Source: Chara braunii
Taxonomy: Eukaryota > Plantae > Charophyceae
Direction: 5' to 3'
NCBI GenBank assembly: GCA_003427395.1
Contig: BFEA01000035.1
Location: forward strand, 4,359,068-4,423,067
DNA: 64,000 bases
The position numbers and the translations under genes were made by a program. Shown in pieces: positions 8,192-54,632 of the stretch; the stretch's first letter is position 1; each line of letters opens with the position of its first letter. The notes beneath the pieces were generated by a model. That model was not told where the DNA came from and did no database searches. It saw only the letters and a list, made by a program, of their open reading frames with translations.

Positions 8192-9309
8192 ATTGATTCT
8201 GAACTTGAGCTGGCTCTATCATTGTCTCTCAGTGCCGTATCTTTTAAGTTCGCGAACCTGGCGTTCAATTTACGAGTTGGCTATTATTAGTAAGTATGGA
8301 GACACATGGAGACACATATGAATAAAGGTGTGATTAGCTTGCCGTAGGTTCGCGGTGATAACGACGAGGCCGCGGAGAGTCGTCCTTTGGAGAAAACGAA
8401 CCCTTTAAAAAAGAGTTGGCAAGAATGGAAAACCATGGATACTTTCTAGTCCAGCGTGGCGATTAATTTTTATTGTATAGATAAATTACGTGTTTTGATG
8501 ATTTCATTAGAAGAAGAAAATTAATAACATGGCTCAGGCTAAGAAAAGCACGTGCGCTAAGGAATTTTCGGAATTCCCCAAAAAAAGAAATAAATGAATG
8601 CTTCGGTTATGGTTTGTTTCTGGCTTACTTGTTTTCCGCCTTCCTTTTGGTTTTGCCCAGGCGTTGGTTGAAAAACCATGCGTGGCCTTTTGTTTTGCGT
8701 TGTTGTTTGTTCTTGGCTCTGCCAAGTCTTAAAAAAAAAACCACGTACGAACCCTGGGCAAAGGTCCCAGTCAGTGACGATTTCATTTCCGGGTCGTTTG
8801 TGAGGAATTCCCGGCCTCATGGTTTTTTTTTTTTTTTTTTGGCTCATGTTTTTTCATTATAAGGGATTCCTTGCTGTTTCGCCCCCCCCCCAAAAAAAAG
8901 AAAAAAAAAAAGAAAAAAAAAAGAGGCAGGTGCGCTAAGATGAAAGGGGTTGGGTCCGAAGCTGGACATAACGCTGGAGCAGGCAGTAGCCCTTGGTCTC
9001 TGAGGGCTCTGCTTCTTTTCTACACCGGTAATGCACGGCCGTCTTCACCGGAATAGAACGCCCGGTCAGTGTCCCTGTATCTGGACGGAGAGGTGGACCA
9101 AATACGAACTATAATGACCGGGCGTTCTATTCGGGCGAACAAGGTGGTTACGATGAAACACGACTCTTCTCTTTTAAGAATACTCTTTTTTAATTTATTT
9201 TAAGATACTAAAGCAAGAAAGGCGAATTGCAATGGGCGGTCGTAACGTCGACGTGCATGGCCAAATTTTATCCTCCTCCCTTCGAAATTCTCTGCGCCTA
9301 TATAGCTGT

Positions 9310-10031: not shown

Positions 10032-10348
10032 TGGACCTTGTTCAATCCCACGATCGCCATGAGGTGAAGAAGTTTACCTGTGCGTGTGGTTCTGTCTCAT
10101 TCTTTTCCCCGACAAACTCCTTAAGTATTGTCGAGCCTGTATACATTCGTAATGATAGGGAATTGTGTTCGGGGAAATAAGATACGGCCCTGTCACCATC
10201 TTGTTTATTCATGTTTCTGTTTTGCAGCTCAGTTCATCCACGACCGTCTGTTTACTTTTTCGCGTCTGTCATTGCTTTCCAACCCATGCAAGCACATTTA
10301 CCTGCTATCAATGTGTACCTGCTGGTCCATCTCAATCTTTTCCTTGTG

Positions 10349-10422
<74 letters not shown>

Positions 10423-10502
10423 ATCTTTCCATTAAATTTTAGTATGTCAGTCTTTCATGCTGGTCCATCTCAGTCTTTTCCTTGTGCTCTGTGTGTGTGT
10501 GT

Positions 10503-11187
10503 NNNNNNNNNNNNNNNNNNNNNNNNNNNNNNNNNNNNNNNNNNNNNNNNNNNNNNNNNNNNNNNNNNNNNNNNNNNNNNNNNNNNNNNNNNNNNNNNNN
10601 NNNNNNNNNNNNNNNNNNNNNNNNNNNNNNNNNNNNNNNNNNNNNNNNNNNNNNNNNNNNNNNNNNNNNNNNNNNNNNNNNNNNNNNNNNNNNNNNNNNN
10701 NNNNNNNNNNNNNNNNNNNNNNNNNNNNNNNNNNNNNNNNNNNNNNNNNNNNNNNNNNNNNNNNNNNNNNNNNNNNNNNNNNNNNNNNNNNNNNNNNNNN
10801 NNNNNNNNNNNNNNNNNNNNNNNNNNNNNNNNNNNNNNNNNNNNNNNNNNNNNNNNNNNNNNNNNNNNNNNNNNNNNNNNNNNNNNNNNNNNNNNNNNNN
10901 NNNNNNNNNNNNNNNNNNNNNNNNNNNNNNNNNNNNNNNNNNNNNNNNNNNNNNNNNNNNNNNNNNNNNNNNNNNNNNNNNNNNNNNNNNNNNNNNNNNN
11001 NNNNNNNNNNNNNNNNNNNNNNNNNNNNNNNNNNNNNNNNNNNNNNNNNNNNNNNNNNNNNNNNNNNNNNNNNNNNNNNNNNNNNNNNNNNNNNNNNNNN
11101 NNNNNNNNNNNNNNNNNNNNNNNNNNNNNNNNNNNNNNNNNNNNNNNNNNNNNNNNNNNNNNNNNNNNNNNNNNNNNNNNNNNNNNN
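10503..11187. other. Assembly gap (other gaps: 4964-5091, 53931-54076, 55502-55703)
   Basis: N runs, mostly flanked by microsatellites or repeats. Confidence 1.
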
Positions 11188-11736
11188 TGTAATTTCGCCA
11201 GTAGACAACCCTTGGCCAAGGGCAAGCAAAGAGCAAAGAACGTGTGCTTGGAGTTGTCCTGCTTTTTTTTTTTTTTTGGGGGGGGGGGGGGGGCTCAAGT
11301 TCGTCCTCTCAGCTGCTGAAGGGTAATGGGGGTTCGTCTAGTCTAGTCGTGGCTTCTTATCTTATCTTATCCGCTTGTTGCCAAGTGCAAAACTTGGGGG
11401 AAAGGTCCGCACAAGTTTTCCTTTTTCGTTTGGAAAGCAGCGCTTACATGGAAGGCATGATTTCCAGTAGAGCATCACTTCAACGGGCGGAGTAAGAAAT
11501 ATCTGGTGTTTTTTTTTTTTTTTTTTTCTCGACGTATCCATGTAAGAGAACGTTTGTATCGAGAAACCCACAGTAAAACGTTTGGCACGATACGGAAGGT
11601 CCAAAAGAACGACCTCGTTGAAAAAAAAATAAAAAAAATTATTAAAAATATTTTTTCAGAAAAAGAGAGAACCCTCAACGGTAGGGAGGAAATATGCGAG
11701 TCTCTATGATTATTACTGCATTATTTTAGTGATTGA

Positions 11737-14800: not shown

Positions 14801-16344
14801 TCGTGTACCTTGCAAACTGGGAATTTGTGGGAAAAGTACTGGACCAGCACAGTCTGGTTCCAAAATTCCCTGGCTAGCTTGGTATGAACATGCCCTGATT
14901 GTGCCCCGAACCACATTTCACATGGCTACTCCGAGCATTTGGAGATTAGGAGGCGTGGGGTCGGTCCTTCACCGCGTGCGGCGCATGGTGAAAGGGAGCG
15001 CCTTTGAAGCAAGTAGGGGGCTTGGAAACTCAGAGAGGCTGGTCGAGTCCTTCGCTGCCTGGTCAATGGCAGCGCCACTTTTGAAGACCTACGGGGATTG
15101 GACCCTCTTAATTTTCTTCCCCTCTTCGCCGGATATATGTTCTTGTTTGGTGCGACTACCAAATTTAGGCTGATTGTAAATTGCTAAGGGAAACTGATGG
15201 GCTGGCTGAGACCTGGCCACTGAGGGAAAGGGTCAAGGAGAAGGGAGTCGATGATGGTTGTACCTCAGTCAGGAGGGTTTAGGCACACTGGCAACCTGTA
15301 CTTTTATTTGAGGGAGACGAGCCCACTGTAGCCCCTCCCTGCGATGTTCGATTGTGATATATTATTCTATCACTGATGCTCCTGCGATTGTTGTATTGTG
15401 ACGTTCGATCCCCAATTCCCTTTTTGTATTGAAAGGGAGACATGCCCAGTTTGTATGTTTGGCCCTAGGCTACTTTTATTTGAGGGAGAAGCACCCCCTC
15501 ACATTAACCGCACCCTGCAATGAAATTCAATGTCCTATTGCAGGAGGGTTTTCATGGGAAATTGACTTCTTTCTCAAAATCTTGTCTCCTGCCGGAGCCA
15601 ATTTGTCCGCTTTTTTGTTCTTGCATACACTATGCTACATAGTTCTGAAGATGCCCTCGAGCCTCCCCGGGTGACCCATCTCCAATTTGGAAGATGGGGC
15701 TGTGGATTCTGACTCGTCAGGGCCCAGGCCACTTGCACCCCGGGCCCGAAGTTGGATTCTTTCTTTTACCTGGGCGGGTCCCCTGGCCAGGCCAGGAACA
15801 GCCCAGCCTTCGGTGCGGAAAATGGGGGACCACGGAAAAGGCCTGACAAATGAAATAGAAAGACCAGTGAATATTGGTCAGAGAGCATAGATGCTTTTAC
15901 TTTCTGTCATCTCCGTTAGTGCTTTCCTAGTTTGAACGTGGTCATGACATCTGTGTTGTATACTTTCAAACGTAGTGGGAGTGAGAAGGGCTTGAAAGGT
16001 TAAGTTTTGCGGTATTGCGGGAACTTTGATTGGGCGACATCGGGGAAGAAACCAATCTGTTCTGTTTGCAGTCCGTTGGATTGAAGGGGAGGTGTTTTCA
16101 GTATGAATGTAATGTGAGAGTGCATTTGACTTCAAAAGTTTGTCAGGAGGAAACACGAGTAAACAAGAGCAAAAAAACACCGGTACATGGACAGGCTCTG
16201 ACACCTGACACACCAATGAGATCCGTGCTAGATATTTAAAGAGAAGATACCCCGCGCGGTCCTCAGGGCAAGGGCTTTGGCCTTTCTGCAGTGGTTAGTA
16301 CCTTTGAAATAGTGCCTGGTGGTGTGAATGCACCGGGGCTGTGT

Positions 16345-48351: not shown

Positions 48352-51309
48352 ATGCCTCGCCGCATTCCAGAATTCTTAGACACGCTGGCTGCAAGTGTAA
48401 ATGGGTACCAACCAGTCAGCCAGCTCGGACAACCAGCTGTACGTGTTAAGAAAACCAAAGTCCAGAGGAGGGCAACAAAGCAAGATGAATTTAACGAGTA
48501 CGTGGAAGGATCCGTAGGGGCGGACGCGCTACATGTATCGGATGGGACGAGCTGTGGGGGATCTCTGAGTCCACAAACGAGCCCTTACGAGCAAGTGCAA
48601 AATCAGCCGCCGCTGACAATGCCAGGGCTAGCGCAGCCTTCGCTGCAGTTGCCAGTTCCGTCATTGCTGGCGCAGAACCAGCAACAGATAGAGAACGACT
48701 CTGTGTGCTTTGTTGCGAGCTCGCCACATGGAATTGGCGACGATGATGTCAGCGGGGGACTCGTGGTGGACTCGGGAGGAGAGGTTCGGATGGGAGAGGA
48801 GGAGGAGGAGGAGGAGGGGGGGGGGATGGAGGAAGAGGACGAGGAAGAGGAAGAAGAGGGAGTCATCAGCAATGGGGAGGGACAGCAGGGGTATTGGGAG
48901 GGGGGGAATGCAGGAATAGCCTCGGAGGTGGAGGTCCCACGACCGGGAGAAGAGGCAAATATGCCTATGGCGGATGTCTCGGGCATCGCCACTGGAATCA
49001 GCAATGGCTCTGGTCAGGGAACAGGAGATGTGGAAATGGGCGCAAATGGTATGAGAGGGATGCAACAGGATTCATTGCTGGCCTCCATGAAAACAGAGGG
49101 AAGAGTGAAACGGAAAGTCACGAAGAAAATCGGGAATGCTGGCACGGAATGCGGGGCCAGTCCGGGGGATAAGAAAAGGAGACTGGAGGACAGGCCCCAA
49201 CCCACGGCGGCGAGCTCTAGGGTACCAGCAGCAGCGCTATCAGCAGAAGATCGACTTGCCCGCATCCGCAACCTCTCCGCGGAGCTGAAGAAGGCGCACA
49301 AGACCATCGCTCGGCTGCGCCTCACGAAAGAGGCTTCCGAGAAAGAGCTTGGGAAAGCTCAGGAGATCTTGCAGGCAAAGCCTCTCCTCGACAAGATCAA
49401 TGCGACTTCTAAGGTGTGTATGGACAACGGCTATCCGGATGTCATCGGGTTGATCTGTGATGCAATATTGTCAGGATCGCTGCCGATTCCTTCAATCAGG
49501 TTTGAGCGACTTGTCACGCTAGGTATCAACTGTAACAAGGAATTCACCAATCAGTTGCAGTACTCTGAAAGAGAAATGCGATACTTCGCATCCCTGAAAC
49601 GCCAAAGCTGTGCTGCTGCTGTGCTTGAGGCTATGCGTGGTCCAATGAATGCTGGTGGAGGGCATGGGCGGCATGCTGTTCGCTCTGCCCGTATCACAGA
49701 GTTCGTTCCTTCCCTGAAAGCCATCGAGCGCTTCGAAAAGCAGATGCAAATGCAGCAGCAGCAGCAGCAACAACAACAGCAAAAACAACAGCAACAGCAA
49801 AATTCACAGCAGCCGGAGGAGGTCCCAAGTGCAGGGCAGCAGAACCAGTGTGGGCAGCAGCAGGCGGCATCGGGATCGGTGGGCAGTGGCGGAAATGGCG
49901 AAGGCATGGATGGAGGAGGAGTCGTTGACGGTGTTATTTTTGACAGCTGTGCAAACGGAATGATGATGGGCCCGGTTTACGATGGGAACATCTGCCCAAC
50001 GGTTGGTCTTGGCGGAGGCATTGGGGGGAAGAACGGCAGTGGTGCAGGCGCGATCGTCGGCTGCAATGGAGCGGCTCTCCTTACGACTGCCTCCTCCAGC
50101 CCTGGGAGGGCGCTGTCTGCTGGTGCAGGGTCCCAAACTGGTGGACATTGTGTTGAGGGCGTGCATCTGGGAGAGAGCGAAGATGAAGATGAAGTGAGGC
50201 CATTACCATCCTCGAACAGGACAGCGGCTTATCCTAACCCAGACGTTCCCAGAGGAGGAGGAGGCTTAATGGTAGGTATGCAACCTGGACTAGAGTTTGT
50301 GCATGACGTGGAGGAGACCAAAGTTTTCGATTGCATTCCACGACCACCGCCGCCTGTGCTTCGGCAAGACCAGCAGCAACCACCTCCACAGCAAAAGCAG
50401 AAGCAGAAGCAGCAGCAGCAGCAGCAGCAGCAAGCGTCTCAACAGCAGCAACAGCAACAAGCATCGCAGCATCAGGCATGCGTCGGAATTCAAGCATACG
50501 AGTATCTGCAGGTCCCTGGAGCACTCCATGGCCTTGGGATAGAACTAGATGCGGGTATGAGGCCGCCTGTTGCATTGCAAACAACATCACCCCAGCAGCA
50601 ACCACCACCGCAGCAAGTGAGCGCTTTGCAGTTTGACACTAGCCAGATCCAGGTGTCTGGGACAGAAGTGTGCATTGCCACAACTTCTGGGCCTCCACCG
50701 CAACAGCAGCATGAGGAGAAGCCTGATTTGCGGCTATTCCATTCCTCAGCGCAACTTCAGCAGCAGCAGGAGCGGCAGCAGCAGCAACAGCAGGCGCAAC
50801 AACGACCAGAACAAGCGATGGTCTTTGAACAAATGGGGATGGGAGATCTGAGCCATCTTCAGCAGCTGAGCTCTCTGCAGGCGCAAATGAGACAGCTAGA
50901 GGCGCCTGTGCAGCTGCGGCAATTGGTGGGAGACGATTTGAATCAGTTTGACCATCTGAGAGTGGAAGCTGCGTTTGGAGAGTGCCAGATGCAGGCAGAG
51001 GAGATTGCCCAGTACAACTCTGCCATCGCCACAGCGAGTGCATTGTCGTCACTCTCGCCAACGTCTGTGTTTAATGCTCCTCACGAGCAGCGGCAGAATC
51101 CTCGCCAGCAGATACACGAGGCAGCAGGGATAGATTTGAGGTCCCAAAACTATCATAGTGTCATGCCGCCATTCGATTGTGCAATGAGTGGTCGCATGCA
51201 CAACGAGAGCGGAGTTCTTGGATTGCACTCTCCCCTTGGGTTCCCGCCTTACTTGCTCACGGCTACAGGTCAAGACCTTGGTCGATTCGGGTATCCCAGC
51301 TTGCGCTGA
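48352..51309 (+). CDS. Large (probably terminal) coding exon: Gln/Glu/Gly-rich low-complexity protein with a central coiled-coil plus helical domain (possibly transposase-derived)
   Basis: The only long stop-free frame (48001-51309). A pyrimidine-rich tract and acceptor TGTGCAG end at 48337 and the first ATG follows at 48352. It has polyQ/polyE codon runs and a globular segment at ~49240-49740. Upstream exons may exist, so the true start is uncertain. Confidence 0.85.
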   Translation: MPRRIPEFLDTLAASVNGYQPVSQLGQPAVRVKKTKVQRRATKQDEFNEYVEGSVGADALHVSDGTSCGGSLSPQTSPYEQVQNQPPLTMPGLAQPSLQLPVPSLLAQNQQQIENDSVCFVASSPHGIGDDDVSGGLVVDSGGEVRMGEEEEEEEGGGMEEEDEEEEEEGVISNGEGQQGYWEGGNAGIASEVEVPRPGEEANMPMADVSGIATGISNGSGQGTGDVEMGANGMRGMQQDSLLASMKTEGRVKRKVTKKIGNAGTECGASPGDKKRRLEDRPQPTAASSRVPAAALSAEDRLARIRNLSAELKKAHKTIARLRLTKEASEKELGKAQEILQAKPLLDKINATSKVCMDNGYPDVIGLICDAILSGSLPIPSIRFERLVTLGINCNKEFTNQLQYSEREMRYFASLKRQSCAAAVLEAMRGPMNAGGGHGRHAVRSARITEFVPSLKAIERFEKQMQMQQQQQQQQQQKQQQQQNSQQPEEVPSAGQQNQCGQQQAASGSVGSGGNGEGMDGGGVVDGVIFDSCANGMMMGPVYDGNICPTVGLGGGIGGKNGSGAGAIVGCNGAALLTTASSSPGRALSAGAGSQTGGHCVEGVHLGESEDEDEVRPLPSSNRTAAYPNPDVPRGGGGLMVGMQPGLEFVHDVEETKVFDCIPRPPPPVLRQDQQQPPPQQKQKQKQQQQQQQQASQQQQQQQASQHQACVGIQAYEYLQVPGALHGLGIELDAGMRPPVALQTTSPQQQPPPQQVSALQFDTSQIQVSGTEVCIATTSGPPPQQQHEEKPDLRLFHSSAQLQQQQERQQQQQQAQQRPEQAMVFEQMGMGDLSHLQQLSSLQAQMRQLEAPVQLRQLVGDDLNQFDHLRVEAAFGECQMQAEEIAQYNSAIATASALSSLSPTSVFNAPHEQRQNPRQQIHEAAGIDLRSQNYHSVMPPFDCAMSGRMHNESGVLGLHSPLGFPPYLLTATGQDLGRFGYPSLR

Positions 51310-54578: not shown

Positions 54579-54632
<54 letters not shown>

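Follow-up and report, generated by a model that had tools for sequence, protein, structure and literature searches.

Has the charophyte alga Chara braunii made a gene of its own from the DNA-binding end of a transposase? The question is raised by a stretch of 64,000 nucleotides (contig BFEA01000035.1, positions 4,359,068 to 4,423,067; hereafter the window, numbered from its first letter), in which the plus strand from 48001 to 51309 runs for 1102 codons without a stop. The first ATG of this run, at 48352, opens a protein of 985 amino acids (aa). An initial annotation, made from the letters of the window, had already marked this open reading frame (ORF) and described its product as a low-complexity protein with a single ordered island, which was read as the DNA-binding region of a P-element/THAP9-like transposase that had lost its catalytic part and been kept open. 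The ORF (48352-51309, plus strand, 985 codons, stop included) is confirmed by the record, its product being an exact match to protein P0001 of the public collection, and both its start (MPRR...) and its end are common to a protein of Spirogloea muscicola (P0002). Its coding part seems to consist of one exon. We consider that the protein is probably the domesticated N-terminus of a divergent P-element-type (P/THAP9-like) transposase, now a host gene. It would have kept the part of the enzyme that begins with a short SSRV motif, includes a long pairing helix and closes with the helix-turn-helix (HTH) domain, and would have lost the zinc-binding N-terminus and the entire RNase H catalytic domain, with a basic patch that resembles a nuclear localization signal (NLS) and acidic, G-rich and Q-rich disordered regions in place of the lost parts.

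The island is the only strongly conserved part of the protein. It covers aa 281-466 (49192-49749), is made up of the SSRV motif, the long helix and a helical globule, ends at a polyglutamine (polyQ) run and defines a family of 16 database proteins. In windows of 30 aa, the identity between P0001 and P0002 is 63-83% over most of aa 271-450 (53% in aa 331-360) and 10-40% elsewhere, so the single ordered island of the initial annotation is well founded. It starts with RPxxTAASSRVPAxALS (aa 281-297, 49192-49242, plus strand, as are all the features of the gene given below), of which the SSRV/SHV motif is common to the transposase-like relatives in the alignments. Then comes a long amphipathic helix (aa 298-342, 49243-49377), a putative coiled-coil or leucine-zipper dimerization element that has a helical K/E/L-rich counterpart in all the relatives. 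AlphaFold predicts one helix over aa 298-358, directly upstream of the HTH, with a predicted local distance difference test (pLDDT) of 66-74, in a run on a 2-sequence alignment whose overall pLDDT of 51 was judged unusable as a model. The coiled coil claimed at the outset is thus recovered as a predicted long helix, and its position immediately before the HTH is that of the N-terminal architecture of P transposases. By likeness to residues 88-151 of the P element transposase of Drosophila (DmTNP), this helix may serve for dimerization (PMC10824691).

The rest of the island (aa 343-466, 49378-49749) is a conserved helical globule that contains the HTH. Its AlphaFold model (me7f102b78df1; aa 338-468, 17-sequence alignment) has a pLDDT of 80.2, a predicted template modeling score (pTM) of 0.69 and six helices, at model residues 5-21, 27-36, 45-57, 69-79, 84-92 and 118-130, and the Chara protein keeps every residue that is invariant in the family (A, A, L, N, PS). 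Within the globule, aa 377-466 (49480-49749) are the sub-part that, in the predicted model, superimposes on residues 134-199 of the P element transposase. Two helices (EREMRYFASLK and AAAVLEAMR) are followed here by a 25-residue basic loop rich in G, H and R and by a third helix, (VPS)LKAIERFEKQ, which in the model is likely the recognition helix. The TNQLQYSEREMRYFASLKRQSCAAAVLEAMRGPMN...EFVPSLKAIERFEKQ segment is present, and the end of the island is as sharp as originally described, with the polyQ run beginning at aa 467 (49750).

The kinship with P elements is clearest in the predicted structure. In a comparison with 48,161 chains, the P element target, named beforehand, ranked first, with a gap of 2 units to the next match and with boundaries that are exactly those of the domain. 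The model superimposes on the solved HTH domain (DmTNP 151-200), and the match covers the end of the DmTNP pairing helix and the whole HTH. The domains of DmTNP are THAP (1-88), dimerization (88-151), HTH (151-200) and RNase H (200-566), and the first catalytic residue is D230 (PMC10824691; PMC7776569). By these published limits the match stops at the border between the HTH and the RNase H, the same place at which polyQ starts in P0001. Language-model features of the island point in the same direction, with nearest ESM Atlas clusters that score 0.92, PF12017 (Tnp_P_element) in 7 of the top 30 and PF21787, or THAP together with PF12017, in other near clusters; taken alone, these neighbors are only a lead. 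A shape search of the ESM Atlas gave a highest template modeling (TM) score by query of 0.40 (root-mean-square deviation of 2.7 A, model residues 50-130), with PF21787 and PF12017 among the members of the cluster. Both leads are weaker than the structural match and agree with it, and the three independent kinds of evidence (language-model features, structure and ESM Atlas shape) converge on the P element/THAP9 family.

Alternatively, the island might have no transposon ancestry and be a common helical or HTH domain of the host (Myb-like, winged-helix-like or new), its match to the P element being a generic resemblance among three-helix folds. The rank, the gap and the exact boundaries of the structural match make this quite improbable, as does the fact that the language-model and shape searches independently give the same Pfam families. 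Myb-like and MCM winged-helix identities were dropped for their low Z and short overlaps.

Genomic context is provided by the distant relatives of the island. Its profile was run with HMMER against 1.84 billion representatives and returned 16 matches, 14 of which are distant relatives on metagenome or Logan contigs (E 4.6e-17 to 5.2e-4). These contigs look eukaryotic, with sparse, fragmented genes and with WDR5, cellulose synthase fragments, EXS and retrotransposon gag as neighbors. The 17-sequence alignment has the signature G..DVL..LA.A.L.G.LP..S....RL.....NL....TN..RYSD.EMRFFS.L.K..SG.AVL..LRG....G....(loop)..N...PS..AI...D, and in the distant relatives the island has its canonical position, with a region that resembles P transposases in its features downstream of it. 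In the longer ones (P0018, 825 aa; P0024, 797 aa; P0005 and P0022, 695 aa; P0006, 736 aa) an N-terminal CxxC...CxxC is followed by the coiled coil, the island and, ~10 residues on, LGxSxxxI, and a conserved block (hxhxxDxTD ... F.GD ... GYD) is found ~40 residues after the HTH. The CxxC...CxxC of their N-termini is C2C2 zinc-ribbon-like; it is not a THAP (C2CH) module, and there was no PF05485 match. At loci L001, L004, L005 and L006 (proteins 24-56% identical) the island ORF is followed by a colinear second ORF on the same strand, with the motif F.VP....G.p.y.i.DpPHKlKN ... LD..V..rVA ... D.Q ... LF ... AL..AG..EAL (IEDPPHKLKN), and a third conserved ORF is present in L001, L005 and L006, the L004 contig ending within the second block. 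The language-model neighbors of the second ORF that carry Pfam domains are all TNP-like RNaseH_N/GBD/RNaseH_C clusters (PF21787, PF21788 and PF21789; scores 0.83-0.90). The DPPHxxKN of the relatives resembles DPPHLLK..RN, the D(2)H motif of P/THAP9 enzymes, which is a lead and not a test. The position of the island upstream of this DxTD...DPPHKLKN region, with its TNP-like neighbors, is one more reason to doubt that it is an ordinary host domain.

The gene found at these loci (L001:1897-6391, L004:6682-10674, L005:10001-15221 and L006:9886-14267) is conserved, invisible to Pfam and up to ~1,300 aa long, in up to three colinear ORF blocks. The order of its parts is a C2C2 zinc-ribbon-like N-terminus, coiled coil, HTH island, DxTD/GD/GYD, a long coiled coil with EYxRRQ and the DPPHKLKN block, and a single JGI sample (3300060284) has three divergent versions of it. 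The gene may represent a divergent, so far undescribed P-like transposase lineage of uncultured, possibly streptophyte, algae. In L005 an inverted pair of 18 nt (9182-9199 / 15983-16000; 94% complementary, single copy), ~800 bp off the gene on each side, could represent terminal inverted repeats (TIRs); by a rough estimate, its chance expectation is ~0.03. In L006 the flanking inverted match has 23 nt at 78%. A word-index search with the alignment of the second ORF returned its source proteins only, and two scans of metagenome contigs for related loci gave no confirmed locus.

Orthologues in other streptophyte algae, for which the initial annotation had proposed a search, were found in Spirogloea muscicola. 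A full-length relative came from the word-index search (EukProt SM000088S23719; P0002, 990 aa) and a second protein from the representative search (SM000079S22416; P0003, 503 aa); the full ORF restricted to the island returned only Spirogloea in the word-index search. The coding sequences of the two Spirogloea genes lie at s88:382270-386567 and s79:54549-56997. P0001 and P0002 agree in their N-terminal MPRRxPxFLDT, in total length, in where the island lies and in a few C-terminal motifs (LGFxPY), and the rest is barely alignable. SM000088S23719 therefore has, in a distant species, the same architecture, as would be expected of the orthologue of a domesticated transposase. The short N-terminal motif MPRRIPEFLDTLA (aa 1-13, 48352-48390), with 9 of 11 residues the same in the N-terminus of P0002, supports the ATG at 48352 as the start and the homology of the two genes over their full length.

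P0002 and P0003 are homeologues, 92% identical, which differ at none of 172 positions of the island and at 22 of 182 in the N-flank upstream of it (Fisher p = 2.9e-7). The island is thus a constrained domain within fast-drifting sequence, and these protein-level proxies (30-aa window identities and homeologue differences) seem to agree with purifying selection on it. In a maximum-likelihood tree of the island, P0001 and the two Spirogloea proteins are a clade with 99/99 support and short branches, one of four; the other three consist of metagenomic relatives, several of them transposase-like. At the level of protein sequence, this tree would fit one domestication, then slow evolution. The gene is common to Charophyceae and Zygnematophyceae and therefore old. 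The initial annotation had called it lineage-specific, a term that does not hold as worded, given that at least two lineages of streptophyte algae share it. No land-plant protein reached E 1e-3 in the HMMER search of the island profile.

These data also bear on the idea that the locus is non-functional, a decaying transposon fragment or cargo kept open by stop-free Q/G-rich repeats. Repeat-rich coding-like sequence can remain open by chance, but here ~400 of the 985 stop-free codons have ordinary composition, the start motif, the length and the end motifs are common to a distant alga, and the island is unchanged between homeologues whose flanks have drifted. There are, in addition, no TIRs and no second copy in the 64 kb or in the protein collection. 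We find this explanation very hard to sustain. A chance ORF was also dropped; the probability of 985 stop-free codons by chance is ~3e-21.

What is left of the rest of the enzyme? When all the relatives and their downstream ORFs were compared by tblastn with the window, only 49138-49737 matched, and no zinc module or catalytic remnant was detected in the 64 kb. The RNase H with a DDE triad and a GTP-binding insertion that marks the whole enzymes of the P superfamily is absent from both the protein and the 64 kb. Because polyQ begins where the RNase H would and the 64 kb have no catalytic part, we call the protein truncated; with the same architecture in Spirogloea and the island-specific constraint, this upholds the initial view of a transposase N-terminus kept open without its catalytic part. 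No TIRs were found around the ORF, where flanking inverted repeats are only (CT)n/(GA)n microsatellites, nor any other part of the relatives in the 64 kb, as the initial annotation had anticipated on seeing neither TIRs nor a DDE domain. The microsatellites in question, (CT)n(GT)n at 46882-46964 and (GA)n at 54581-54632, ~7.6 kb apart, are the sole inverted repeats that bracket the gene and are not TIRs. The protein collection has one such protein from this genome, a count that paralogues of >50% identity, hidden in its cluster, and unannotated copies would escape. Within the window and the protein collection, then, the gene is stationary, with no TIRs, no catalytic remnant and no repetition, as befits a domesticated gene.

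Several observations weigh against a P element origin, or against DNA binding as what has been conserved. Pfam searches at E<=10 with the ORF and its island, with 22 relatives and with the downstream ORFs gave no relevant match, and the PF12017 family hidden Markov model (HMM) recognized neither the ORF nor the island nor any relative even at this threshold. RNase H, GBD and C-terminal domains had no match in the relatives or the downstream ORFs, either in Pfam or in PDB sequence searches. Sequence and profile searches of the PDB (with the island, the alignments of the relatives and the second ORF of L001) gave coiled-coil noise only, and Foldseek found no match in the PDB, including on re-inspection of its matches. 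The match to transposase profiles proposed as a check by the initial annotation has thus failed to appear, and its P-element/THAP9-like DNA-binding region is supported by structure and not by sequence profiles. Since the PF12017 HMM test failed, we call the protein P-type by fold and context and not a member of the Pfam family. The 25-residue loop between HTH helices 2 and 3 is unusually long. The transposase nature of the relatives is suggested by language-model features and motif resemblances rather than by fold or HMM, and inverted-repeat scans around them gave no convincing TIRs, only short matches with few copies. Finally, both Spirogloea proteins are without VPSLK (5 residues), and P0003 also without VTEF, where the putative recognition helix has its N-cap (gap sites at aa 511-512 of P0002 and aa 354-355 of P0003), a position at which nearly all other members of the family have PS. 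The absence is either a real deletion or an artifact of gene model or assembly; with VPSLK missing in Spirogloea, DNA binding may not be the conserved property.

In the flanks of the island, an acidic E/G-rich low-complexity region (aa 141-250, 48772-49101; E 23%, G 22%, D+E 26%, K+R 4%), poorly conserved in comparison with P0002, is a putative activation domain. Next to it is the NLS-like stretch that the initial annotation had placed upstream of the island (KRKVTKK...DKKRR), which is present as a bipartite KRKVTKK-x14-KKRR (aa 253-277, 49108-49182) with its KKRR half kept in P0002; K+R make up 26% of aa 251-297, and the stretch is a putative nuclear import signal, to judge from its residues. 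Beyond the island, the C-terminal region (aa 467-985, 49750-51306) is polyQ, G-rich and Q-P-rich, with a few short conserved motifs near its end (SAL..., LGFxPY) and no similarity to any part of the transposase-like proteins of the relatives. The description of the protein as almost all Q/E/G/P holds for aa 141-250, 467-560 (Q 24%, G 22%) and 661-830 (Q 32%, P 12%), but not for the two ends (aa 1-140 and 831-985), which are of ordinary composition and poorly conserved. Since the flanks, acidic and polyQ, look like regions for activation or condensate formation, we prefer a transcriptional regulator as the product of domestication, a role that we only infer.

In such a regulator, the NLS-like patch, the pairing helix and the HTH would together supply what a dimeric sequence-specific DNA-binding protein needs. 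The protein would enter the nucleus and dimerize through its helix, the HTH recognition helix (VPS-LKAIERFEKQ) would bind the major groove of DNA, and the basic G/H/R loop before it might lie in the minor groove, as the HTH domain of DmTNP does on terminal repeats. The acidic and polyQ regions would then recruit or sequester partners, making the protein a sequence-specific transcriptional regulator, which may act on what remains of the cognate transposon family's ends.

The main functional rival keeps the same origin and gives the protein another job, that of a repressor of transposition which, like KP or the 66-kDa protein, poisons or competes with a cognate active transposase instead of regulating host genes. 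In Drosophila, truncated P proteins that have DNA-binding and dimerization parts do repress; KP (207 aa) and the 66-kDa P element repressor keep the N-terminal DNA-binding and dimerization regions, have no catalysis and act by DNA binding (PMC7776569). The piece retained in Chara is a coiled coil plus an HTH, the domain that in DmTNP contacts the inner half of the terminal repeats (PMC7776569), and transposase-like relatives of the same family exist on other algae-like contigs. However, KP and the 66-kDa protein rely on their THAP domain, and an equivalent zinc module is absent here; ~800 residues of acidic and polyQ sequence, an NLS and conserved terminal motifs are unexpected of a simple poison subunit; the fact that two algae so distant from each other conserve it suggests a function for the host, one that has lasted longer than any single invasion by a transposon; and tblastn of the relatives found no cognate element in the window. 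On balance we regard a repressor as unlikely and retain the transcriptional regulator.

A wider scenario, which we advance tentatively, joins two events. The domestication would have taken place before the split of Chara and Spirogloea, turning a coiled coil and an HTH into a polyQ/acidic nuclear regulator that was later lost, or became unrecognizable, in land plants. Its source would be an undescribed, Pfam-invisible P-like lineage with a C2C2 zinc ribbon in the place of THAP and ~1,300 aa in three ORF blocks, surviving in uncultured algae.

Some features of the window lie outside this argument. A polypyrimidine tract (48240-48338), read from the sequence, ends in ...ttgtgcag 13 nt 5' of the ATG; with TGCAG at its end, a 5'-untranslated-region intron is possible, which would place the start codon in the second exon, and the end of the tract is possibly its 3' splice site. 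Between 48603 and 50636, antisense and off-frame ORFs of 100-134 aa overlap the gene on the minus strand and in the other plus frames, for example a C-rich one at 49551-49907 (minus); they are due to the stop-poor CAG/GAG/GGN repeats of the real frame. Far upstream, a run of N (~10503-11190), an assembly gap, is preceded by (TG)n at 10352-10422 and 10489-10502, and the gap and (TG)n account for a dip in GC to 0.29 and a cluster of spurious six-frame ORFs at 10165-11326.

Among known systems, the nearest part is the dimerization helix plus HTH (residues ~88-200) of DmTNP (PDB 6P5A). The identity to it is only 8%, there is no HMM-level similarity, and the Chara protein is without THAP, RNase H, GTP-binding insertion and C-terminal domain; in their stead it has a 25-residue basic loop before the third helix and disordered acidic and polyQ flanks. 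As with vertebrate THAP9, the host gene would derive from a transposon of the P lineage and is without TIRs, and the neighbors of its island carry PF12017/PF21787. THAP9 has retained the whole enzyme, with its catalytic activity (PMC10824691, PMC8230255). Unlike THAP9, the Chara protein keeps the pairing helix and the HTH only and does not score with PF12017. The obscura and montium groups of Drosophila have stationary P "neogenes", which belong to the same truncated-P kind as the KP and 66-kDa repressors. All of these retain THAP, are short and are found in animals, whereas the present protein, from streptophyte algae, has no zinc module and carries ~800 new residues of disordered sequence. 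Plants have their own regulators from domesticated transposases, FHY3/FAR1 (Mutator-like), DAYSLEEPER (hAT) and ALP1 (Harbinger), the last being the subject of PMC4890758. The Chara protein is like them in that a transposase-derived module is reused in the nucleus of a green-lineage host, but they come from other superfamilies and as a rule retain most of the transposase fold, and it is P-type.

New transcription factors are known to arise when DNA-binding modules are recruited from transposases. To our knowledge, the cases known for the P superfamily (THAP9, the Drosophila P neogenes and the KP-type repressors) are all animal, and a limited literature search found no P-type exaptation in plants or algae. 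The gene would also point to a divergent P-like transposase family that current profile libraries miss, in which case such elements are probably under-annotated in algal genomes. A domestication older than the split of Chara and Spirogloea would make this the first case of P-type exaptation outside animals. The module, reduced to a pairing helix and an HTH within activation-domain-like sequence, would offer a compact DNA-binding domain open to testing. With a P-type module fixed in algae related to the land plants, this route of recruitment would also take in the green lineage.

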